Source of the DNA: Salpingoeca rosetta
Taxonomy: Eukaryota > Protista > Choanoflagellata
Length of the DNA stretch: 64,000 nt
Assembly (NCBI GenBank): GCA_033442325.1
Contig: JAWQFM010000001.1
Coordinates: 2,316,973-2,380,972 of the forward strand
Direction: 5' to 3'
The notes under the pieces were generated by a model that saw nothing but the letters and a program-made list of their open reading frames with translations, was not told where the DNA came from and did no database searches. Below, in pieces: positions 17,156 to 37,819 of the stretch. Each line of letters begins with the position of its first letter. Position 1 is the stretch's first letter. A program made the translations under genes and the position numbers.

Positions 17156-20100
17156 ATGCGTGTGACGACTGTGTTGACCGTCACGCTCGTGGCGCTTGTG
17201 GCGTCAGTGTCTGGTCAGGCCACCATCTGTACCGACACCTGTCGCACATCCAACAACGGCATCTGCGAGGATGGCGAGCAGCCCATTATGGGCGCCGGTA
17301 ACTTTCTCGCAAACGCCCAGAACCTCTGTGAATTTGGTACCGATTGCTCCGACTGCGGCCCCCGAAGTACGTTTTGCGACATGGATGCTTATTGGTGTTG
17401 TCTGATATCAGGGCTTGTGCGTGTGTGTATGTATGTATGTATGTTATGTATGTATGTATGTATGTATGTATGTATGAATGAATGTATGTATGTATGTATG
17501 TGTGTGTGTGCGTGTGTGGCTTGTGTGGCTTGTGCGGATGCGTGGATGCGCTGCGTTGTGTTTTCTGTGAGACATCCCCATCCGACTCGTTGTATTGTTG
17601 TTGCGTTGCTGCACTGTCATCTTTCACAACTTTTGTCACCCGCACACCCACGAACCTAACCTTTTCACTCTTCTGCCGGAACTCACCCATCCTCCTCACC
17701 CTTTCTCCTCCTCGCTTCACCTTTCCATCTCTCTCTCTCTCCTTTCTGTCGCAGCTGAGGCTGACCGTAACCTGAACCTCAAGGCCCCACTCAAGGGACA
17801 GCGTGGTGACCCAGGTGACATGGGTGACAACGGCATCCAGGGTCCAAAGGGTGACAAGGGTCGTCAGGGAACCCCGGGCTTTGATGGCACCAACGGCGAC
17901 AAGGGCGAGAAGGGCGTCCGCGGCCCCTCTGGTGCGCCCCCCCCCCCTTCTTGATTTGATGCTGTGTTGCCCTTGGTTGGTTTGCTGTATTATTATTGTT
18001 AGTGCTCCTTGTAGAACAAATGGCACGTTGTCACCGACTTACACCTGAACATGCACGCACTATCATCAACGCTTTCGCTTTTGTCTCACACCAACACACA
18101 CACACACACACACACACACCCAAACCCACATCTGTCTCCCATCCATGTATGCATGCATGCATGCATGCAGGCGAGGACGGTCTGCCCGGCCCCCGTGGCT
18201 TCCCTGGTCGCGATGGTGACAAGGGCGAGCGCGGTGACACTGGTCGCCAGGGTGATCCTGGTGTCGATGGTGTTCCCGGACGCAAGGGTCAACGCGGCCC
18301 GCAGGGTGCCAGCGGCGACAACGGTACCCCTGGTACGTACAGCTCTAGCATGCGTGCTTGTGTGTGTGTGTGGTTTTTTTTTTGGCTTGTTGTGTGCTTC
18401 CATCGTCTTGATTTCCCTGATGTCCTTTACGCACATCATATTTACTCACACGCACAACACCTCGCTCCCTCACTTCTGTACAACAACAACACCACCACCA
18501 CCAACAACACCACCACCACCACCAACAACAACGACAACAACAATGCACAACCGAAACAGGCAACGACGGAACCAACGGACGGAAAGGTCAACGTGGTGCT
18601 CCTGGTCCAGATGGAACGCCGGGTACTGATGGTGCCCCTGGCGTCGATGGAGTCGATGGTAACCCCGGCCCGCAAGGCCCCAGGGGTGAAGACGGGCTCC
18701 CAGGCGCTGTGGGTGACCCAGGTACCGATGGCTTCGATGGAACAGATGGCGTCCGCGGCGATCGCGGTGACAAGGGTTTCCGCGGCGCAACCGGTGCTCA
18801 GGGCGCGCGCGGCGAGGACGGCCTCAACGGCGACGCTGGTGACCCAGGCTTTGACGGCACGGACGGTGTCAACGGCCCACGCGGTCCTCGTGGCCCCGTC
18901 GGTCTCCCAGGCAAGTCTTTTTTGAAGTCTTGCGCTAGTGCGCTGCATCCAGGCATCCTCTCGTTGCTGCTCGTTTGGATGCTTGGATGGGAGGGCTCGT
19001 TTGCTTGTTTGATTGCAGGTCCTCTTGTTGTGTCTGTGTCTGCGCACGCTTCTTGTGTTATTTGCAAACCCGCTACAGTGCTGCGTCCCCAACTATCATC
19101 AGATCATCTCCCAATAGCAATGCATAATCTCTTGCTTGATCTACGTCTCTAACGACCGATCGACTGCTTACTCTCTTACTCATCGTTGGACTTTCTGTCC
19201 TCTCCTCACACCCTTTGTCGCGCTCCCAACACACCACAGGCATGAAGGGTAACCAGGGCGAGGATGGTCTGCAAGGCATTGCAGGCACTGACGGCTTTGA
19301 TGGGACTGATGGCCCTCGTGGTGACCCGGTATGTTGGTGCTGTCTTTGTGGTCTGTGACATGCACGCAGCACGTTCGTATGTGGTGTCCTCATTTTTTTG
19401 TTTTGGGTTTTTGCCGCACTTGTGTGTGCCGTTTTTCCTCACCCACCCGTGCCCTCCCCCCCGGGTTTTCTACATGGTGTAGGGTCTCCCTGGTGAGCCT
19501 GGTGCTCGGGGTTCCCGTGGTCCCTCCGGTACCCCTGGTACCCCTGGTAGCAAGGGCCAGCCCGGCCCACGCGGCCCCGACGGTGTGAACGGTGCTGACG
19601 GTGCTGACGGCGCCGATGGCCCCAAAGGCTACAAGGGTCAACAGGTGCGTAGCATGTGTCTGTGTGCGTGTGTGTAGATGTAGATGTGCAATTGCGTGCG
19701 TGCATGTATGTCCACGTGCATGTGCACACGTGCGTGCGTGCGTGCGTACCACTGTTTTCCTCTTCTGCGCGTCGTTTCATAACGGCCGACCTTTTCCTGA
19801 CAACGCTACATCTTTGTTTCTCACACGATCAACCAATCAACATGTAGGGTAACTCTGGTACCCCTGGTGAAGATGGCCTCGATGGTCGCAAGGGCCAGCG
19901 TGGCCGTGACGGTGAAGGAGGTCTGCAGGGTGACCGCGGTGCTCCTGGCAACCCTGGCCCAACTGGCCTCAAGGGTAACGTCGGGTACGTTTGCTTCTCT
20001 TGTTTGTCGCCATCTTGGCTACTTTGTGCATGCGCGGGTGTGGTTGTGTCTCCACGTCCTTGAGAGTGTCCTTGCGCTCGCTTTCCTTGCTCGACGTGCA

Positions 20101-21226
20101 CTCGTTGTTCAGTCAGCATCGCGTGTTTTGTCCTCGACCCAACTCGCTCCCTCACTCACACGAAACATCCACAACTCACACGAAACCTGCACACACACCT
20201 CGCACAAACGCTGCACATCCACCACCATCATCAACATTGAAACATGTGTAATTGCTTAATGGCAGCCCCATGGGTCTGCCTGGTCCGGCCGGCGGCGAGT
20301 GCGTGTACGGCGCATCCGATATCGCCTTCATTCTCGACTCGTCTGGTTCCATCCTCCCCGAGGACTACAGCCTGCTGAAGCAGTTTGCCGAGAACGTCGT
20401 TGACGAGCTTGTCATCTCCGAGTCTGAGTCGCGCATTGCCGTCGAGATTTTCTCGGACGTGCAGGAGGTCTCCCTCCAGTTCAGCTATGACAAGCCCACC
20501 ATTGTCGACACCATCCGCAACCTGCGCCACATCCAGCGCGGTACTGCTACCGGTGCTGCGCTCGAGCTCGCGCGCCGCGACATCTTCAGCAGCTCCGACC
20601 CCAACTACCGCAACCTCGCCGTCCCCGCCATTGCCGTCGTCATCACAGACGGTCAGTCGCAGGAGGAGCCCGCGTTTGTTGCAGAGCAGGCCCTCCGCCT
20701 GCGCGAGCTTGGCGTCACTGTCCTTGCCCTCGGCATTGGCGACGGCACCGACCCCGACGAGCTCCTGGCCATTGCTGGCTCTGCAGACCGCGTCGAGCAA
20801 GTCGAGCAGTTCGGCGACCTCGTGCAAGAGTTTGTCCGCGCCTTCCTCCAAGGCATCTTCTGCGCTGATTCGCCCGACAAGGGCGCTCGCGGCCGCACTG
20901 GTGACCCCGGTGTTCCTGGCACGGTGCGTTTTTTGGCAGTCTGCTTGCTTGCTTTGCTTTGCGTTGTCACTTGTGACTGTTTTTGTTGTGTTGTGTTGCG
21001 TGTTTGACTGTGTTTGTTTGTTTACCAAACGTCACCACGATGTGATAGCACTGCTGCTTGCTTGGTTGTGATTGCATGTGTTTGGTGGTTGCTCTTTTTC
21101 TGTTTGTGTGGATACTAGCATGCACACGCAAAAGTCTATTGCGCTCACGTTTCTTCTTCCACGTCCAACCTCACCCTGTAACCAACCACACACACACACA
21201 CGCACACACACACACACGAACACACG

Positions 21227-21265
<39 letters not shown>

Positions 21266-24200
21266 ACGCACATGCATATACAAACCATTAATAGGACGGA
21301 GCTCGTGGTCCTCAGGGTCCTGCTGGCCGCGCTGGTGAGGACGGTTTGAACGGTACACCCGGACGCGATGGCGAGCAAGGCCTCAAGGGCGACCCAGGGT
21401 TTGACGGCACAGACGGTGTTGACGGCCGCCCTGGCCCTCGTGGTGCCACTGGTGCACGTGGTTCCCGCGGTGAGACTGGCTCCCCTGGTGAAGATGGTCT
21501 GGACGGGCGCAAGGGTCAGCGAGGTCCCAGCGGCACGCCAGGTTCTGACGGGACACCAGGAGCTGACGGGACACCAGGCGTCACTGGCGACAAGGGCGTT
21601 CGCGGTCCCAGCGGACCTCAAGGTCCTGCTGGTAGGGATGGTGCCGATGGTGCTCCCGGCCGCGACGGTGAAGACGGCTTGCCCGGACGCAAGGGCCAGC
21701 GCGGCCCCGCTGGCCTCAAGGGCGAGCAAGGCGACGTTGGTCCGGCCGGTCCTCAGGGTCCTTCTGGCGGCGCAGAGTGCGTTGGCCGTGCTATTGACGT
21801 GTTCTACCTCATTGACGGCTCCGGCTCCATTGTGTCCTCGGACTTTGAGCGCGAGCGCACCTTCCTCAGCGACCTGACGGACGCCCTCTTTGCCTTCCCC
21901 GGCAACGACGTGCGCATCAGCATTGCCGAGTACTCCACCACTTACACGCAGGTCCTCGTCCCATACACGGCTGACGAGACAACCGCGCAGAACACCATCT
22001 CCAACGTTGTGCAGTCTGGCGGCGCTACAGCTACGGGCACGGCGCTTGGCCTTGCCGCAGATGACATTGGTGCAAACGCCCGCCCCGACGCCGCGCGCGT
22101 GCTTGTGCTCCTGACTGACGGTGCCACCTCAGATGGCGATCAGCAGAACATTGACCCATCCGTGTCCGACCTCAACAGCATTGGCGTGTCCATCACCGCC
22201 ATTGGCATTGGCGACAACGCTGACGAGACTGAGCTGCTGCAAATTGCCGGCGACCCCACCCGCGTCTTCAACAACATTGCCTTTGTCGACCTCGGCGACT
22301 TTATCGACGAGATTATCGGCTCTGTCCTCGACTGCGTCGGCTATGACGGTGTGGACGGTGCCAAGGGTGAGCGTGGCGATGCTGGCACCCCGGGTCCTCG
22401 TGGTCCAAAGGGCTTTGCTGGCAACGACGGTATTGATGGTGCTCCTGGTGACAAGGGCTTCCAGGGTACTCCAGGTACCCCTGGTCGCGATGGTGAGGAT
22501 GGTCTTGTTGGTCCTGCTGGCGATCAAGGTCCTCGCGGTGCCCCAGGCGACACTGGCAACCCAGGTGTGTAACCCTCAGCTCACGCGTGCAAACAACCGC
22601 ACAATTTACGTGTTATGTTTGCGTCTACATGTCTGCACAGCTGTGAACAGCGTGCGTTTGTTGTGTTGTGATGATGTGATGATGATGTGCGCGTAGGCGC
22701 TTGCGACAGCCAACGCGCACATGATCATCATGATGCACAACAACAACAACAACAACAACTGCACTCACGTGTTTATTGCTCGCTCACTTACTCACCCCAC
22801 TCATCAACAAACACATCATCACACACATTACGTCATATGGCATCACATCTTAGGTGCAAACGGTTCTGATGGTGTGCCCGGCTCTGATGGCCCCAGGGGA
22901 GCACCCGGTGAGCAAGGCTTGAAGGGCCTTCGCGGCGACCCTGGCTTTGATGGTACAGATGGCATTGACGGCCGTAACGGCGCTAACGGTGCCCCTGGCC
23001 CTGACGGTGCACGCGGATCCCAAGGCGATCGCGGTGATCGTGGTGCTTCGGGCACCCCTGGCGAGGACGGCCTTCGCGGTATCAAGGGCTTTGCTGGCTT
23101 TGATGGTACGGACGGCATTGACGGCCGCGACGGAACCCCTGGGCCTCGTGGCGACCCTGGTGATGTCGGCGCTCCAGGTCCTCAGGGCCCTGCTGGTCGC
23201 GACGATAACACTGTCTACTTCAAGGGTCAGCAAGGCGAGGACGGCCTCCCTGGCGACGTCGGCCCAGCTGGCCCCAAGGGTGAGCGCGGCCCTGCAGGAA
23301 ACACTGGTCCCCAGGGTCCACGCGGTCCTGACGGGCACCAGACGTGCATGGGCTCCACAGACCTTGTTCTCATTCAGGACAACTCTGGCTCCATTTCCGA
23401 GGAGGACTTCCAACAGTCCATTGCCTTCCTGCGCGACATTGTGCAGACCCAGATTGATCTCGAGGGCACGGGCTCACGGGTTGCTGCCATGACATTCTGC
23501 GCCACGCAGACGCTCCTGACCACCTTCACCGGTGTCACGACGGACGCCCTGAACGCCCTCGACTCTGCAGTCAACACCGTGTCTTGCGGCACAGCCACGG
23601 GTGCGGCCCTCGACTTTGCCATTGCCAACATCCTCAACGACAACAGCAACCCGGGCGCGCGCCGCGTGGTGATTGTGGTCACCGATGGTGCTTCGCAGGA
23701 GGATTCGTCGTTTGTGACTGCGGCCTCAGACCGCCTCCACGCTGAGGTTGACGAGGTGTTTGCCATTGGCGTTGGTCCCGCATCCAACCTTGCTGAGCTG
23801 CAAACCATTGCCACCTCCAACGACAACGCCTTCATTGAGACCGACTTCGACGCTCTTCGCGACCGCGATCTGACGCAGCAGCTCTGCTCTGGCTATGACG
23901 GCGTTGATGGTACCCCTGGACAAGACGGTACCCCTGGTGAGCCTGGCCTCAAGGGCCTGCCTGGTGACGACGGCTTCGACGGTACAGATGGTGTCCCCGG
24001 CCGCCGTGGCGCTGACGGGCCTCGTGGTCCCGAGGGCTTCAAGGGTGAGGCTGGTCTCGATGGACGGCCAGGTAACCCAGGGCCTGATGGCACCCCAGGA
24101 AACAAGGGTCGTCGTGGTGACTCAGGTCTGCCTGGCCGCGATGGTATTCCAGGCCCTCGTGGTGCTACTGGCGACAAGGGTTACAAGGGCTTCCGCGGAC

Positions 24201-24375
24201 GCACAGGCATCAAGGGTGCCATTGGCGAGCGTGGTGATCCTGGTATCGGCGGGCCAAACGGTGACTCTGGTGAGAAGGGTTACAAGGGCGAGAAGGGCCC
24301 CACTGGTCCTCGCGGCACCCCCGGTACTCTGGTACGTCAAAAACACGCCTCGAAACACATTGCAGTGCTCCACTT

Positions 24376-24413
<38 letters not shown>

Positions 24414-27400
24414 GATGATGACGCCTTTCTTGTTCATCATCACTATTATGGTTGTCATGATTGCTCGTCGAGTGGCTTTTGCTGTTTTTCTGCGACAGTA
24501 TCGATCATTCGTGTCCTTTTCCTTCCTCCCTCCCCTTCTTTCTGCGTACTTGCACACCAACCCACTCCCATCTGCTCACCCCCTGTCATTTAATGTTTTT
24601 CCTCGTCAATAGGGTGTGAACGGTCGCCCAGGCTTCAACGGGCTGGACGGCTCGGATGGTCCTCGTGGTCGCGACGCCGACGATGGTGCTCAAGGTGACA
24701 AGGGCTACAAGGGAAGCCGCACAGTCGGCCCCTCTGGCGACAAGGGCTACAAGGGCACACTCGGTTACAAAGGCATGCAAGGTGACAAGGGTATGCAGGG
24801 TGACCGCGGCAGCGCCGGCGACTGTGTTGACCGCGCTGAGCAAACCCGTCTTCTCGACAGCTGGAACGCGTGGCTGCAGACGTTTGACGACTACCGCCAG
24901 GCCGTGGCTGAGGTGTGCAACGGGACCGCTGACCGCACGGCTGAGCTCAATGCCAAGCTCTCTGCGGTGCGCATGATTGTCTCGGAGAACTTCACGGACG
25001 TTTCCAACTACATCACATCCACGCGCGACTCCAAGCTGGCCCTGATTGACGCCTACTCGCAGGCGCTCAACGACCGCGTGCAGGCCGACCGCGACAGCTA
25101 CGTTGCCCGCTACGACGCGCTCCGCAGCGAGATTCTCGACTACGTCTCTGTCAACCGCATGGGCGACAAGGGCGTCAAGGGTGTCAAGGGCCAGACAGGC
25201 GCCCCAGGCATCAAGGGTGAGGCTGGCGAGCCCGGTCTGCCTGGTCTGGACGGTACGGATGGTGTCAAGGGCATCAAGGGTGAGACCGGCAACCGCGGTG
25301 ACAACGGCGCAACAGGCGATCGCGGCGACAGCGGCATCCCAGGCGACAAGGGTATCAAGGGCCGCACTGGTGAGGACGGCCTGCGTGGCGAGCCCGGCTT
25401 TGACGGCACAGATGGTCGCCGTGGCATGCAGGGTGACAAGGGCTTCCGCGGCGCTGACGGTGCTGATGGCATTGATGGCAGCCCAGGGCCACGTGGTGCA
25501 CCTGGTGACAGCGGCGCTGATGGGCGCCCTGGCGAAGACGGCCTCAACGGGACCCCTGGCGTGGATGGTGGCCCTGGCGACCCTGGTGATGCAGGTGCAC
25601 GCGGACCAAAGGGTTTCCGCGGCGCTGACGGTACCCCAGGTACAGATGGGACCCCTGGTGACAAGGGCCAGCGCGGTGACGCTGGTGAGACAGGCCTTCC
25701 CGGCCCCAGCGGCGAGTCTGGTGACAAGGGCTTCAAGGGCCAGCGCGGCGTTGACGGTTTGGACGGCACCGACGGTGCTCCTGGTGCCCCTGGTGCTCAG
25801 GGTGAGTCTGGGCTCAAGGGACAGCCAGGTGATGCTGGCTTCCGCGGTGCACCTGGCAGCGATGGTGTCCCTGGTGAGGACGGTGAGAAGGGCGAGCGCG
25901 GTCCACAAGGCCGTGCTGGTGAGGATGGCCTGATTGGTGCTCCTGGCGACGATGGCTTTGATGGTACCAACGGTGCTCGTGGCCCTGCTGGCCCTGCTGG
26001 AAACGACGGCATCCCAGGGACTGACGGTGCTGACGGTGCGCGAGGCACGAAGGGAATCCAGGGCGAAGATGGGCTTCCTGGTGTCCCTGGTTTGACTGGA
26101 ACAGACGGGCCTCGCGGCCCTGATGGGTCGACTGGTGCAAAGGGTGACACTGGCGAGCCTGGCTTTGATGGTGCCGAAGGAGTGAAGGGTCTCACTGGTG
26201 TTGCTGGTGATAAGGGTGTGCTCGGGCCAAAGGGTTATTCTGGTCCTAAGGGTGACCCAGGCCTTGATGGTACAGACGGTGCAGATGGTGCTGTTGGTGA
26301 TCCTGGCCCCTCTGGTATTCCAGGACCGAGCGGAACCCCAGGCTCAGACGGCGTTGACGGGCCCAAGGGTCTGCGCGGCGATGATGGCGTGAACGGTACC
26401 CCAGGTAGCGATGGTGCCCCAGGGCCTGTTGGTGACACTGGCCCGCAGGGTACTCGCGGTGACCCTGGCTTCTCTGGCCTCACAGGCACAGATGGACCTC
26501 GCGGACCTGCAGGCCCCGACGGTGCGTTGTTCTCTTTGTTGTATCCATGTCAAGAAATTGTGTTTTGACGTTTACATAGCATGTGGTGCACTGCTCGTTC
26601 ACAACACGTTGCCTGGCTCAGTAACAAGGTGTTGCTTGTTGTGAATTTGAACGTTTGTATGTTTCTTTGTGTGTGTGCATGTTGTTTGTTTGTTTGTTTG
26701 TTTGTTTGGGTGGTTGGTTTTATGTGCATTGACGTACGTATGTTGTTTGTTTGTTCGTGTGACAATGTGTGGAATATCGTGTGTGTGTGTATGTGTGTTT
26801 TGTCTCCAACGTGCTTGTGCGTAACAAAACTGCGACGACACTCATTCACGTACCCCCTCCCTTGCTTGCATTCTGCTACTGATAGGCATTCCTGGTACCC
26901 CTGGTACTGACGGGACTGACGGTGCCAAGGGACAGCGCGGTGAGCGTGGCGACACTGGTCCTGTTGGTGCCCCCGGCTTTGACGGGACGGACGGAACCCC
27001 TGGCCGCGACGCCAGCAACGGTGCAAACGGCGATACTGGCGACACAGGCCCTGCTGGACCCCAAGGCGTCAAGGGCCGCGACGGGTAAGCCGAACAAGTG
27101 CAATTGTTGCTGCTGCTTGTTGGTGTTTAAGTTGTTGTTGCTTGTGGGTGTTGTTGTTGCTTGTGGGTGTTGTTGTTGTTGTTGTTCATTGTCTTGCCCT
27201 TCAGCCTTCCTGCCTCGATTGCCAATGCGATCACGCACACACGCACGCACTGGCACGAACTCACACACGTTGTCTGGACTCGCTTTGTGATGCTTGATCG
27301 TCTCCCCCCCCCCCCCTTTTCTCAACCCACCACCACCACGCGCACACATCCACCTATGTATACAGTGAGGTTGGCTTGGAAGGTCCTCGCGGTCGCCCTG

Positions 27401-29079
27401 GTACGGACGGTGCGAAGGGTGAGAAGGGCATTGCTGGTACCCCAGGTGCCCCTGGCCCCCGTGGTCGCCCTGGTGAGGACGGTCTGGATGGGCGCAAGGG
27501 TCGTCGTGGCGACACTGGCCCCGCAGGCAGCGACGGAAGCGACGGTGCAAACGGCGCGAACGGCGACAAGGGCCTCACAGGCCCTGAAGGCTTGAAGGGA
27601 CGCCAAGGCGAGGACGGTATCCCAGGTACCCCAGGCTTTGACGGCACGGATGGTGCTGTTGGTGACCCAGGTATCAACGGGCCCCGTGGCGAGAAGGGCG
27701 AGCGTGGCATCGACGGGATCGACGGAAACCCAGGCACGGATGGAAACCCAGGTGCTGATGGTGCTCCAGGGCCCGACGGCGCAAAGGGTGTCAAGGGTGT
27801 TGCTGGCGATCGCGGTGACGATGGTACGCCAGGTCCCCGTGGTGAGCGCGGTGACATTGGCCCTGACGGCGCGGATGGGACCCCAGGCGTTGATGGTTCC
27901 AACGGTTCCCCTGGTCTCAAGGGTCAGCGCGGCTTCACTGGACTCGTTGGCGAGCCAGGCGACGACGGCCTTCCTGGCAGCGATGGTGCCCCCGGCCCTG
28001 CTGGGCCAAAGGGATTGCGAGGCACCGCGGGGCCTGCAGGACGCCAAGGCGAGAGCGGGCTTGATGGCGACGTTGGCGAGCCTGGCCTTCCCGGAGAGCC
28101 TGGTGAGGACGGTGCTGACGGTGCGGATGGTGAGGACGGAACCCCAGGTGCTCGTGGAGACAAGGGCTTCGCAGGTACCCCAGGCACAGATGGTGAGCCC
28201 GGTGCTGATGGTGCTGACGGTGCCCCCGGCCCACGAGGCATCAAGGGTCGCGCAGGCAGCAACGCGCCTGATGGTGCCCCTGGTGACCCAGGCTTCACAG
28301 GCACGGACGGTGCACAAGGCCCACGCGGTCCGGACGGCCCAGCAGGCCGCGATGGACTTCAAGGTCTCAAGGGTGGCCGCGGTGACCCTGGCGAGGCTGG
28401 CCTCTTGGGCGCCCCAGGTGACGTTGGTCTGAAGGGTGCGCGCGGCCGTGACGGCGAGAAGGGTGTCAAGGGCTTCCGCGGACACCTTGGTGCTGATGGC
28501 GACGAAGGCGAGCGCGGTCCAATGGGCCCTATGGGCGACACTGGCACAGACGGACGCCCTGGTACCCCTGGCTTGCCGGGTGCCCCTGGTGATGACGGCC
28601 GTGACGGTACCAAGGGACGTCGCGGTGACAAGGGACAGGCTGGTGACGCGGCTGTTGGCGACAAGGGCCGCGCTGGTGCGCCTGGCGATGACGGCATCAA
28701 GGGCGTTGCCGGCCTCAAGGGGTCGGAGGGCGCCGAGGGTGCTTGCATCTCCACCCCAGAGTGGGAGGCGTGGACAGCCTCGCTCACGTCCTGGATCTCT
28801 GCCTGGAACGACTTCATGAACGCTGGCGGCATCACCCCGTGTGCCGACTACAACGACACTGCTGACGAGGTTGACAGCTTCATTGACAGCATGCTGTCGT
28901 GGTACCGCGAGCTGCTGGCTGAGCGCCTGGACATGTACGAGCGTGCATTTGACCAGCTCGACGTCGACATTGAGACGGCGCGCCAGAACTGCGAGGAGGC
29001 GCACGACGATCAGGACCTGCTCATCTCATCCCAGCTGGATGACATTGAGGCCCAGATTGACGCCATCTGCAACCCTTGA
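17156..29079 (+). CDS. Secreted collagen-like protein: signal peptide, Cys-rich N-domain, Gly-X-Y repeats, three VWA domains, internal and C-terminal helical domains (about 13 exons)
   Basis: Signal [20 protein letters not shown]; C..TC....[20 protein letters not shown]; hundreds of Gly-X-Y triplets in register across the junctions checked; VWA MIDAS motifs DSSGS (~20335), DGSGS (~21815) and DNSGS (~23380); stop at 29077-29079. Confidence 0.9.
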
Positions 29080-29696
29080 GCTGGCTGCTTGGTGGTGGTG
29101 ATGATGCGACGGTGATTTGCCGTGGCCATGTACAGCCACAGCTGTGCTTAGGCTCATTCAGCGGTTTACTGTCGTTTGTCCTCCCTCCCTCCTCTTCCCC
29201 CGTCTTTTCTGTTTACCTTTTCTTCTCCTCTTCCCCTCTTTCTTTGTCCTTGTCCCTTGTGATGTGCTTCCTACCAGTTTTGCACGGCCTTCGAGCTACC
29301 GTGGTGCAGCACAAGACACACATGTGCGTGCGATTTCCATTTGTCTTGCCAGCAGCACTGGCAGTTTGTCTTGTCTAGCTGGTGTTTTGAGGCGGTGTGT
29401 TGCTTGAATTTGGGTGTCTCATTGCTGCCGCTGCTTGATGCTTGTGCGATTGTTGTTTCTGTGTTTGTGCTTCCATCTCTGTCAACCCTTTCTTCCTACC
29501 TCAACCATACACACGCTCACATTGTAACACGTCCCAACACTTGAGTGCTTTAATTGTGACATTCGTGCATGTGGTGGTGATGGTGTGTGACGTGAATCAT
29601 CCAGCGTGCATGGGTCAAACACAGCAGAGGTTCGAGGGCAAAACAAAAGTGGCCTGGGGGGAAAGTGAACCAATGAGCCGTGCACAACCGAAGCAC

Positions 29697-29741
29697 ATCA
29701 GCTGAGGCCGGCAACACAGTGCTTTACGGCAACAGCATCAC
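29697..29741 (-). promoter_or_regulatory. Orphan duplicate SECIS element
   Basis: Identical to the SECIS at 37216-37260, but preceded only by a frameshifted MsrA last exon. Confidence 0.75.
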
Positions 29742-29964
29742 AAAGCATGGACAAAACAATCACCCATTCAATGCCAGCATACACTCGCGCATGCTGCTGA
29801 GATGTAACGTGGTCGCATTGGTACAGAACATGAAAAAGCAGAAGGCACAACAAAGGTTGTGTGTAAGTGTGTGTGTATGTGTGTGTGTGTGTATGTGTGT
29901 GAGCGGTCATCGTAGTAATGACGCGCAGGCGTGCGGCGTGGGCTTGATCGGCGGCACCACGCAA

Positions 29965-30022
29965 TCAAAGAGAGTTTCCGTGCTCAGTAGAGGGGGCCGA
30001 GCAGGGAGCGGTCCAAGTATTT
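29965..30022 (-). pseudogene. Orphan MsrA last exon with a +1 frameshift
   Basis: Reads KYLDRSLLGPLY* versus KYLDRSLLGPSTEHGNSL* in the other copy (G5 vs G4 run); no upstream MsrA exons. Confidence 0.75.
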
Positions 30023-30415
30023 CTGTCCATGCAGGCAAGAAGGCACGACCAAACGAGCAATAGCAGCGACAGCAGCGACAGCATTCAAGTGAGGGCAAGT
30101 GAGAGACGTAGAAGAACGCAAACAAGAGAAGGAGAAGGAGCCGAAGAAGAGGAGGAAGAAGAACAAGAAGAACAAGAATAGCAAGAACAAGCCAGGCTCG
30201 CCTCTCTCCCGGTCGGGCTGGCTGCATTCCCACTTGATGGGGCAAGACCCGACTAGTCTCGGCATGATGGGACGTACAGAGGGACAGGTAGTTGATGGCA
30301 ATCAATGCGAAGCGTGTGGCTACTTCTTACATGCGACTGGTGGGGGCATTGGTTTATTCGAATGGGAAGAGGGGTTGGTGTGTTCGACTGGAAGACTTGC
30401 ACGGGAGGACAGGTG

Positions 30416-31008
30416 ATTCAGGGCTGCACAAAGACAAACGTCAGCAAACGTGTGGCTACTACAGTACCACAACACAACGGGCCTGGCACAAAACCGCGCG
30501 AAAGATTGCCATATCATTCGAGTGGCGACAAGCAATCGAAACACAGCAACTTGCGCGCGAATTCAGGGCTGCACAAACGTCAGCAAACGTGTGGCTACTA
30601 CAGTACAACAACACAACAGACCCGGCACAAAACCGCGCGAAAGATTGCCATATCATTCGAGTGGCGACAAGCAATCGAAACACAGCAACTTGCGCGCGAA
30701 TTCAGGGCTGCACAAACGTCAGCAAACGTGTGGCTACTACAGTACAACAACACAACAGACCCGGCACAAAACCGCGCGAAAGATTGCCATATCATTCGAG
30801 TGGCGACAAGCAATCGAAACACAGCAACTTGCGCGCGAATTCAGGGCTGCACAAACGTCAGCAAACGTGTGGCTACTACAGTACAACAACACAACAGACC
30901 CGGCACAAAACCGCGCGAAAGATTGCCATATCATTCGAGTGACGACAAGCAATCGAAACACGGCAACTGCGCGAATTCAGGGCTGCACAAACGTCAGCAA
31001 ACGTGTGG
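30416..31008 (+). repeat. 139-bp tandem array, about 4.2 copies
   Basis: Unit ATTCAGGGCTGCACAAACGTCAGCAAACGTGTGGCTACTACAG...CTTGCGCGCGA; ORF ends recur at 30459, 30598, 30737 and 30876 (period 139). Confidence 0.97.
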
Positions 31009-36258: not shown

Positions 36259-36598
36259 TGCTTGCATCTCCACCCCAGAGTGGAAGGCGTGGACAGCCTC
36301 GCTCACGTCCTGGATCTCTGCCTGGAACGACTTCATGAACGCTGGCGGCATCACCCCGTGTGCCGACTACAACGACACTGCTGACGAGGTTGACAGCTTC
36401 ATTGACAGCATGCTGTCGTGGTACCGCGAGCTGCTGGCTGAGCGCCTGGACATGTACGAGCGTGCATTTGACCAGCTCGACGTCGACATTGAGACGGCGC
36501 GCCAGAACTGCGAGGAGGCGCACGACGATCAGGACCTGCTCATCTCATCCCAGCTGGATGACATTGAGGCCCAGATTGACGCCATCTGCAACCCTTGA
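36259..36598 (+). pseudogene. Orphan copy of the collagen C-terminal domain
   Basis: CISTPEWKAW...IDAICNP* (E>K versus the intact gene) with no upstream collagen exons. Confidence 0.75.
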
Positions 36599-37215
36599 GC
36601 TGGCTGCTTGGTGGTGGTGATGATGCGACGGTGATTTGCCGTGGCCATGTACAGCCACAGCTGTGCTTAGGCTCATTCAGCGGTTTACTGTCGTTTGTCC
36701 TCCCTCCCTCCTCTTCCCCCGTCTTTTCTGTTTACCTTTTCTTCTCCTCTTCCCCTCTTTCTTTGTCCTTGTCCCTTGTGATGTGCTTCCTACCAGTTTT
36801 GCACGGCCTTCGAGCTACCGTGGTGCAGCACAAGACACACATGTGCGTGCGATTTCCATTTGTCTTGCCAGCAGCACTGGCAGTTTGTCTTGTCTAGCTG
36901 GTGTTTTGAGGCGGTGTGTTGCTTGAATTTGGGTGTCTCATTGCTGCCGCTGCTTGATGCTTGTGCGATTGTTGTTTCTGTGTTTGTGCTTCCATCTCTG
37001 TCAACCCTTTCTTCCTACCTCAACCATACACACGCTCACATTGTAACACGTCCCAACACTTGAGTGCTTTAATTGTGACATTCGTGCATGTGGTGGTGAT
37101 GGTGTGTGACGTGAATCATCCAGCGTGCATGGGTCAAACACAGCAGAGGTTCGAGGGCAAAACAAAAGTGGCCTGGGGGGAAAGTGAACCAATGAGCCGT
37201 GCACAACCGAAGCAC

Positions 37216-37260
37216 ATCAGCTGAGGCCGGCAACACAGTGCTTTACGGCAACAGCATCAC
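37216..37260 (-). promoter_or_regulatory. SECIS element (type II, GUGA variant) in the MsrA 3' UTR
   Basis: Minus strand reads GUGAU-GCUGUUGCCG-U-AAA-GCA(CUGUGU)UGC-CGGCCUCAGC-UGAU: UGAN/NGAN quartet, helix II with 8/10 pairs, unpaired AAA and a mini helix III; about 220 nt after the stop. Confidence 0.85.
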
Positions 37261-37483
37261 AAAGCATGGACAAAACAATCACCCATTCAATGCCAGCATA
37301 CACTCGCGCATGCTGCTGAGATGTAACGTGGTCGCATTGGTACAGAACATGAAAAAGCAGAAGGCACAACAAAGGTTGTGTGTAAGTGTGTGTGTATGTG
37401 TGTGTGTGTGTATGTGTGTGAGCGGTCATCGTAGTAATGACGCGCAGGCGTGCGGCGTGGGCTTGATCGGCGGCACCACGCAA

Positions 37484-37819
37484 TCAAAGAGAGTTTCCGT
37501 GCTCAGTAGAGGGGCCGAGCAGGGAGCGGTCCAAGTATTTCTGTCCATGCAGGCAAGGCAGGCACGACCAAACGAGCAGTAGCAGCGGCGACAGCGGCGA
37601 CAGCATTCAAGTGAGGGCAAGTGAGAGACGTAGAAGAACGCAAACAAGAGAAGGAGAAGGAGCCGAAGAAGAGGAGGAAGAAGAACAAGAACAAGAACAA
37701 GAACAACCACAGCAGCAGCAGCAACAACAACAAGAAAAACAAGAACAACAAGAACAACAAGAACAACAACAACAACAAGAACAACAACAACAACAAGAAC
37801 AACAACAACAACAAGAAAC

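Follow-up and report, generated by a model that had tools for sequence, protein, structure and literature searches.

A stretch of 64,000 nucleotides of Salpingoeca rosetta DNA (the window; contig JAWQFM010000001.1 of assembly GCA_033442325.1, positions 2,316,973 to 2,380,972 of the forward strand) carries a gene for a predicted secreted, 2847-residue VWA-collagen in which two non-collagenous helical blocks, one internal and one C-terminal, each follow directly on a Gly-X-Y stretch. The blocks are very probably paralogous copies of a single domain of ∼115 residues. Based on sequence features, predicted structures and precedents among other collagens, we propose that three copies of each block would associate to form a trimeric module that sets the register of the collagen chains, and place the probability of this reading, which includes the paralogy of the blocks, at roughly 55%. 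All positions below are those of the window, and all features lie on its + strand.

Anatomy and conservation of the two blocks

Both blocks were found where the initial annotation of the window had placed them (∼24820–25160 and ∼28740–29076), and the two strings quoted there lie in exons of the + strand. The internal block spans 113 residues from Cys to Met (24823–25161), and the C-terminal block 111 residues from its Cys (28744–29076), followed immediately by the stop codon at 29077–29079. As had been claimed, each sits directly C-terminal to Gly-X-Y, and the first Cys of the block (24823–24825 and 28744–28746, respectively) is itself the Y residue of the final triplet, G-D-C in the internal and G-A-C in the C-terminal block. 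A second Cys (24916–24918 and 28840–28842, respectively) is located in a loop 31–32 residues past the first. The last non-collagen residue of the internal block is encoded at 25159–25161, with Gly-X-Y resuming from 25162.

The internal block is contained within one exon (24613–26521, acceptor AG at 24611–24612), which opens with a collagen stretch (24613–24822) whose final triplet is completed by the first Cys of the block. The C-terminal block is contained within the last exon (27366–29079), and introns border neither block. Between them lies the major triple-helix region, distributed over three exon parts (25162–26521, the small exon 26886–27084, and 27366–28743, the last with a match to PF01391) and comprising 979 residues, in which Gly-Pro-Pro triplets are absent and three minor imperfections occur. 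The splice sites of this region were predicted from Gly-X-Y phase and GT/AG dinucleotides, and its exons were joined in silico only to count triplet phase and length.

AlphaFold2 models of the two monomers predicted a common helix-loop-long helix layout, with helices at residues 2–34 and 39–116 of the internal block (pLDDT 81.5) and at residues 6–29 and 38–111 of the C-terminal block (pLDDT 70.5). The internal block consists of an aromatic a/d helix, the loop Cys, an ENFTD motif and a long helix of ∼78 residues, and the C-terminal block of a Trp/Phe a/d helix, a GG-x-x-P-C loop and a long helix of ∼74 residues. Core positions 10, 14, 17, 21, and 24 after the first Cys are occupied by Leu/Trp/Trp/Phe/Tyr in the internal block and by Trp/Leu/Trp/Trp/Phe in the C-terminal block. 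The initial annotation had described a second Cys followed by about 80 residues of heptad-like helix. The Cys and a helix of 74–78 residues are indeed present, but the hydrophobic period of the long helix peaks at 3.6–3.67 residues in both families, with near-zero power at 3.5, and a clean a/d heptad pattern is confined to helix 1 (contrast 0.54–0.58); the long helix is hendecad-like or straight, not heptad-like.

Two further motifs were noted. The E-N-F-T-D of the internal block (24985–24999), within the long helix, is invariant in all four known sequences of its family and includes an N-x-T glycosylation sequon. The R-L-D-M-Y-E of the C-terminal block has the form of the R-h-x-x-h-E trimerization motif; it is not kept in the relatives and was not used.

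A full HMMER search of 1.84 billion proteins identified 13 true relatives of the C-terminal block (E 3e-34 to 1e-4, 25–54% identity), all of them short environmental fragments from Tara, JGI, or ENA metagenomes or metatranscriptomes. Gly-X-Y is followed by G-x-C and then by the domain in 11 of the 13 (P0013 being counted through its longer cluster mate P0025), with P0004 and P0010 beginning at or inside the domain, and all except the truncated fragment P0012 end no more than ∼30 residues from the domain end. The G-x-C junction occurs in both blocks and in every relative fragment that spans Gly-X-Y into the domain. The internal family amounts to four sequences, three of them environmental relatives; the window block shares 46% identity, without gaps, with its counterpart in the environmental contig L009 and 74% with P0017, a fragment from TARA. 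Because relatives of each block exist in other organisms, both are conserved domains.

The order of the elements is conserved as well. L009, an intronless contig of 5.5 kb, contains a single open reading frame (ORF) of 1711 aa composed of collagen, VWA, collagen, an internal block, a helix of 978–980 residues and a C-terminal block, and a second contig of 3.9 kb (L005) contains the tail of an internal block, a helix of ∼1000 residues and a C-terminal block. The arrangement of internal block, ∼980-residue helix and C-terminal block is conserved, and the length of the major helix (979 residues in the window, 978–980 in L009) appears to be under constraint. An imperfection ∼30 residues ahead of the helix end also recurs, as G-D-A-A-V-G in the window and G-R-G-I-P in L009 (L009:2119–5052).

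The full HMMER search returned no long annotated protein from another cultured choanoflagellate; the family may be restricted to S. rosetta and uncultured relatives, or the protein library may be incomplete. Word-index protein searches gave zero matches with the C-terminal block in its 567-aa exon and with the internal block in the 1711-aa ORF of L009, and the internal-family profile retrieved P0017 only. Two HMMER matches, P0015 (a TPR protein) and P0016 (a long coiled coil), were rejected as false positives and subsequently served as decoys, and L010, from a metagenome scan, was a bacterial false positive. The proposed family would be characterized by a G-x-C junction, an a/d helix of 25–33 residues built on aromatic residues (Trp, Phe, Tyr) or Leu, a Cys loop and a predicted amphipathic helix of 74–78 residues, ∼115 residues in total, features found in both blocks and in the relatives.

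A proposed role in chain registration

The assignment of a registration role draws on the position of the domain after Gly-X-Y, the conserved junction and loop Cys residues, ∼45 residues of amphipathic helix that would need partners, the tethering of the chains to one another, and precedents in other collagens. We propose that three copies of each block would pack as a three-chain helical bundle, with interchain disulfides at two Cys levels. A bundle of three chains is the most likely form because the collagen already gathers three chains and because a long amphipathic helix would be unstable alone. At the C terminus, the bundle would nucleate the 979-residue triple helix and align its chains in register, and the internal bundle would do likewise for the helix N-terminal to it and possibly also for the helix that follows. 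The initial annotation had gone further and divided the chain into two folding units, which is too simple because three VWA domains also interrupt the collagen, leaving at least five collagenous segments per chain.

Several points weigh against trimerization. The structures predicted were those of monomers only, and the internal family is limited to the four sequences described above. The monomer models are helical hairpins, which resemble generic helical hairpins and would be awkward for linking two collinear triple helices; canonical trimeric heptad coiled coils do not typically show a hydrophobic period of 3.67 or place bulky Trp residues in the core; a homotrimer with a single Cys at each level has one Cys left unpaired; and the weak sequence matches in the PDB are to apolipoprotein-like amphipathic helices.

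These points would be accommodated if the blocks, although paralogous, did not nucleate trimers, and each chain instead formed its own hairpin or bundle, acting as a hinge or fold-back point, a spacer, a ligand- or lipid-binding surface, a module for end-to-end or lateral assembly, or a propeptide that is removed. We regard this as unlikely, if still a serious competitor. The hairpins on which it draws do not account for the whole of the long helix: ∼45 residues project past the hairpin, and the conserved hydrophobic stripe there needs partners. Moreover, the internal block must join two triple helices and, by topological reasoning, a parallel collinear bundle fits it better than a hairpin. 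The period of 3.6–3.67 is that of amphipathic helices with 11-residue repeats, in keeping with apolipoproteins as the best of the weak PDB matches, and the VWA domains show that non-trimeric interruptions are tolerated in the same chain; the triple helix, however, necessarily holds three copies of each block together. Nearly all members retain a Cys precisely where the triple helix ends, much as known interchain disulfide knots do, and the domain is invariably found after Gly-X-Y, consistent with a role linked to the helix.

A trimeric registration module would bear on a gap in accounts of how the extracellular matrix arose, namely the means by which long triple helices were kept in register prior to, or without, the COLFI and NC1 domains of animals. 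The family defined here is a conserved one, located exactly where a registration module is expected and on a helix of conserved length. If the domain does trimerize, it would provide a small new tag for the production of recombinant collagens. Because S. rosetta is amenable to genetic manipulation, the role of the domain can be tested directly.

Probable homology of the two blocks

The pairwise similarity of the blocks is, on its own, marginal. The gapless alignment of their beginnings, as claimed in the initial annotation, extends over 27 residues with 6 identities; BLASTP between the blocks gave an E of 0.01 with 26% identity over 62 residues, and a Smith-Waterman comparison against 2000 shuffles gave a p of 0.016. 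Only after relatives were added did the similarity become significant. The profile-profile alignment that the initial annotation had proposed as a check was made with hhalign between the C-terminal profile A1 (14 sequences) and the internal profile A3/A4, and gave a P of 5–7e-5 and a probability of 63–67% over 97 collinear columns across both domains. The score of 30.7 was not reached by any control: column shuffling (300 runs) peaked at 19.0 and shuffling of 7-column blocks (200 runs) at 28.3, the reversed alignment scored at most 20.7, and 136 windows taken from the best coiled-coil false positive scored at most 20.5. A weaker point is that the probability drops to 37% with the window sequences removed from both profiles.

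A hidden Markov model (HMM) of the C-terminal family built without the window sequence scored 20.2 bits on the internal block of the window and 19.5 bits on that of L009, aligning end to end (positions 1–109) with one single-residue gap (E ∼5e-8 per single comparison). With the same HMM, shuffled sequences reached at most 9.8 bits (9.3 with the full HMM) and reversed sequences 6–9 bits; coiled-coil decoys, scored with the full HMM, reached at most 10.5 bits. When 1424 open frames from the window and the fetched loci were scored, the best match outside the family was the exon carrying the internal block (14.1 bits, E 0.005), and on L009 the second-best domain was L009's own internal block. The alignments used were those of HMMER and hhalign; mafft-profile misplaced the second Cys. 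These scores, which extend across the internal blocks of both organisms, agree with the duplicated domain postulated in the initial annotation.

It is improbable that the blocks are non-homologous and owe their likeness to chance or to convergence on helicity and on a Cys at the exit from the triple helix. The pairwise statistics and the modest hhalign probabilities, with or without the window sequences, would be compatible with such an origin, and two results speak against paralogy: six-frame genome searches with either block or either family profile missed the other block at E ≤ 10, and in the reverse test the internal-family HMM (four sequences) scored weakly on the C-terminal sequences, save for P0013 (17.4 bits) and P0004 (10.2 bits). 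P0013, however, acts as a bridging sequence, and the score of ∼20 bits over the full length of internal blocks from two organisms exceeds reversed sequences and decoys by 9–10 bits. Chance or convergence would also have to explain why the blocks agree in length (113 and 111 residues), in the phase of the junction, in their aromatic register, in where the second Cys lies, and in the lengths and period of their helices. Under the paralogy favored here, the internal copy might, speculatively, derive from a domain that once stood at the C terminus and was internalized by tandem duplication or gene fusion. That the blocks are gene-model artifacts, intronic or untranslated sequence read as protein, is scarcely credible, as both lie in frame inside long exons, both are conserved at the protein level in intronless environmental ORFs, and the public 2847-aa product ends at the same stop codon.

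The S. rosetta genome encodes a second long secreted collagen (G000:C5 ∼1928181–1936200; L016, L017:528–842), in which a helical tail of ∼100 residues comes straight after Gly-X-Y. Like the window domain, this tail has a ladder of Trp, Phe and Tyr residues and a Cys in its loop, and its ECEE motif is reminiscent of the NCEE of the C-terminal block; unlike the window domain, the tail lacks the junction Cys. It is the next best match of the C-terminal HMM after the internal blocks (9.4 bits), but its resemblance to the family falls short of significance (hhalign probability 16%, P 0.0015), and the HMM gives the tail 13.6 bits where the best shuffle reaches 12.6 and the reversed sequence 10.9.

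Gene context and comparison with known systems

The gene has multiple exons and extends over ∼17156–29079, with a signal-like N terminus, three VWA domains, Gly-X-Y stretches and long collagen exons. Its stop codon matches the end of the 2847-aa product that the public assembly, GCA_000188695.1, assigns to the gene lying upstream of PTSG_00273. The probable first coding exon (17156–17400, 3′ limit approximate) encodes Met, a hydrophobic signal-like peptide and a Cys-rich N terminus without a Pfam match. VWA domain 1 is located at 20318–20821 (PF00092, E 8.6e-29), and domains 2 (21796–22305, E 3.9e-27) and 3 (23360–23863, E 9.7e-26) have Gly-X-Y on either side. Within 20250–24000, a Cys flanks each VWA domain on either side, one just past the preceding Gly-X-Y and one just ahead of the next (for example, ...GGAECVG... 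and ...LDCVGYDG...), in a phase relative to the last triplet that differs from the G-x-C junction of the helical blocks. The gene, which encodes a single S. rosetta chain with multiple collagen stretches and VWA domains, is evidently the "unusual VWA collagen" of Hynes 2012 (PMC3308698).

Downstream, a direct duplication of ∼1.45 kb with ∼99.7% identity relates 28740–30200 to 36259–37720. Its 5′ edge coincides with the exact junction between collagen and C-terminal domain, beginning within the Ala-Cys codons. The orphan domain copy (∼36259–36598) differs by a single amino-acid change, Glu to Lys, and is 100% identical over 117 residues to PTSG_00273, a hypothetical protein of 144 aa from S. 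rosetta ATCC 50818, in whose public annotation the copy is spliced to a short upstream exon without signal peptide or collagen. This identity confirms S. rosetta as the source of the window. The duplication is shared by the public assembly and the present one and is therefore not an artifact of assembly. The spacer downstream of the collagen gene also holds three tandem copies of a 139-bp unit with 98–100% identity (30434–30968).

The initial annotation had found the known collagen trimerization domains unrecognizable in the blocks, and this was borne out by the searches. COLFI (PF01410), collagen IV NC1/C4 (PF01413) and C1q (PF00386) gave zero Pfam matches at E ≤ 1 in the blocks and exons and, for COLFI, also in 14 family members. 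A search of every chain sequence in the PDB with the family profiles A1 and A4 (E ≤ 10) retrieved zero collagen, NC1, or C1q chains, the presence of the collagen VI cryo-electron microscopy (cryo-EM) chains in that set being unchecked. Candidate Pfam matches (DUF5856, DUF725 and others) were below threshold and inconsistent among members, and were set aside as helical noise. Foldseek produced zero PDB matches to the C-terminal model, a wide VIA-align search with the internal model produced generic helical hairpins only (Z ≤ 9, below the level meaningful for helical models), and the ESM Atlas feature search yielded nothing usable for either block. The domain would represent, as judged from these sequence comparisons, an undescribed family within a known functional class. 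A helical oligomerization domain beside the triple helix is already established in collagen VI, and the family is therefore new in sequence, not in principle.

The closest parallel is the coiled coil of collagen VI (cryo-EM, 2025; PMC12354898), a Cys-rich trimeric structure straight after the triple helix that drives trimerization, with core mutations abolishing trimers (PMC12354898). As in the window gene, it lies directly C-terminal to the triple helix of a VWA-bearing collagen and has Cys residues at the base of the helix, which in collagen VI make interchain disulfides; its hydrophobic a/d residues drive chain association, and it is missed by sequence-based coiled-coil predictors (PMC12354898). 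It differs in being short and heterotrimeric and in leading into VWA domains, lying between the triple helix and the C1 VWA domain, whereas the window domain has ∼115 residues and two helices, Trp-rich helix 1 and helix 2 with its period of 3.67, and is terminal or followed by collagen. Coiled-coil domains adjoin most collagens according to McAlinden 2003, as cited in PMC12354898. Collectin necks, class A scavenger receptors and transmembrane collagens follow the same principle, a helical bundle beside Gly-X-Y that registers three chains; they differ in having canonical heptads and ∼30–60 residues, without the G-x-C start or loop Cys, and sequence kinship was not detected in the Pfam scans.

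In choanoflagellates, COLFI and collagen repeats occur only in separate proteins (PMC3308698; bioRxiv 10.1101/2021.10.08.463732). Hynes 2012 mentions a VWA collagen in both sequenced choanoflagellates and leaves the non-collagenous ends undescribed (PMC3308698), and the 2021 preprint, in which VWFA is the commonest partner domain of choanoflagellate collagens, does not mention a helical terminal domain (bioRxiv 10.1101/2021.10.08.463732). The COLFI C-propeptide resembles the window domain in its C-terminal position after a helix of ∼1000 residues (979 here, near the 1014 of animal fibrillar collagens such as type I) and in its presumed function in chain registration, and differs in being globular, with ∼240 residues and another fold. 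Tentatively, and with somewhat less confidence than in trimerization itself, the domain may be seen as a pre-metazoan or parallel counterpart of COLFI: a dedicated, disulfide-locked three-chain helical module that would register and nucleate a helix of fibrillar length, ∼980 residues, used twice in one chain for segment-by-segment folding, and perhaps distantly shared with the tail of the second collagen, which would make it part of a choanoflagellate superfamily of collagen-terminating domains.

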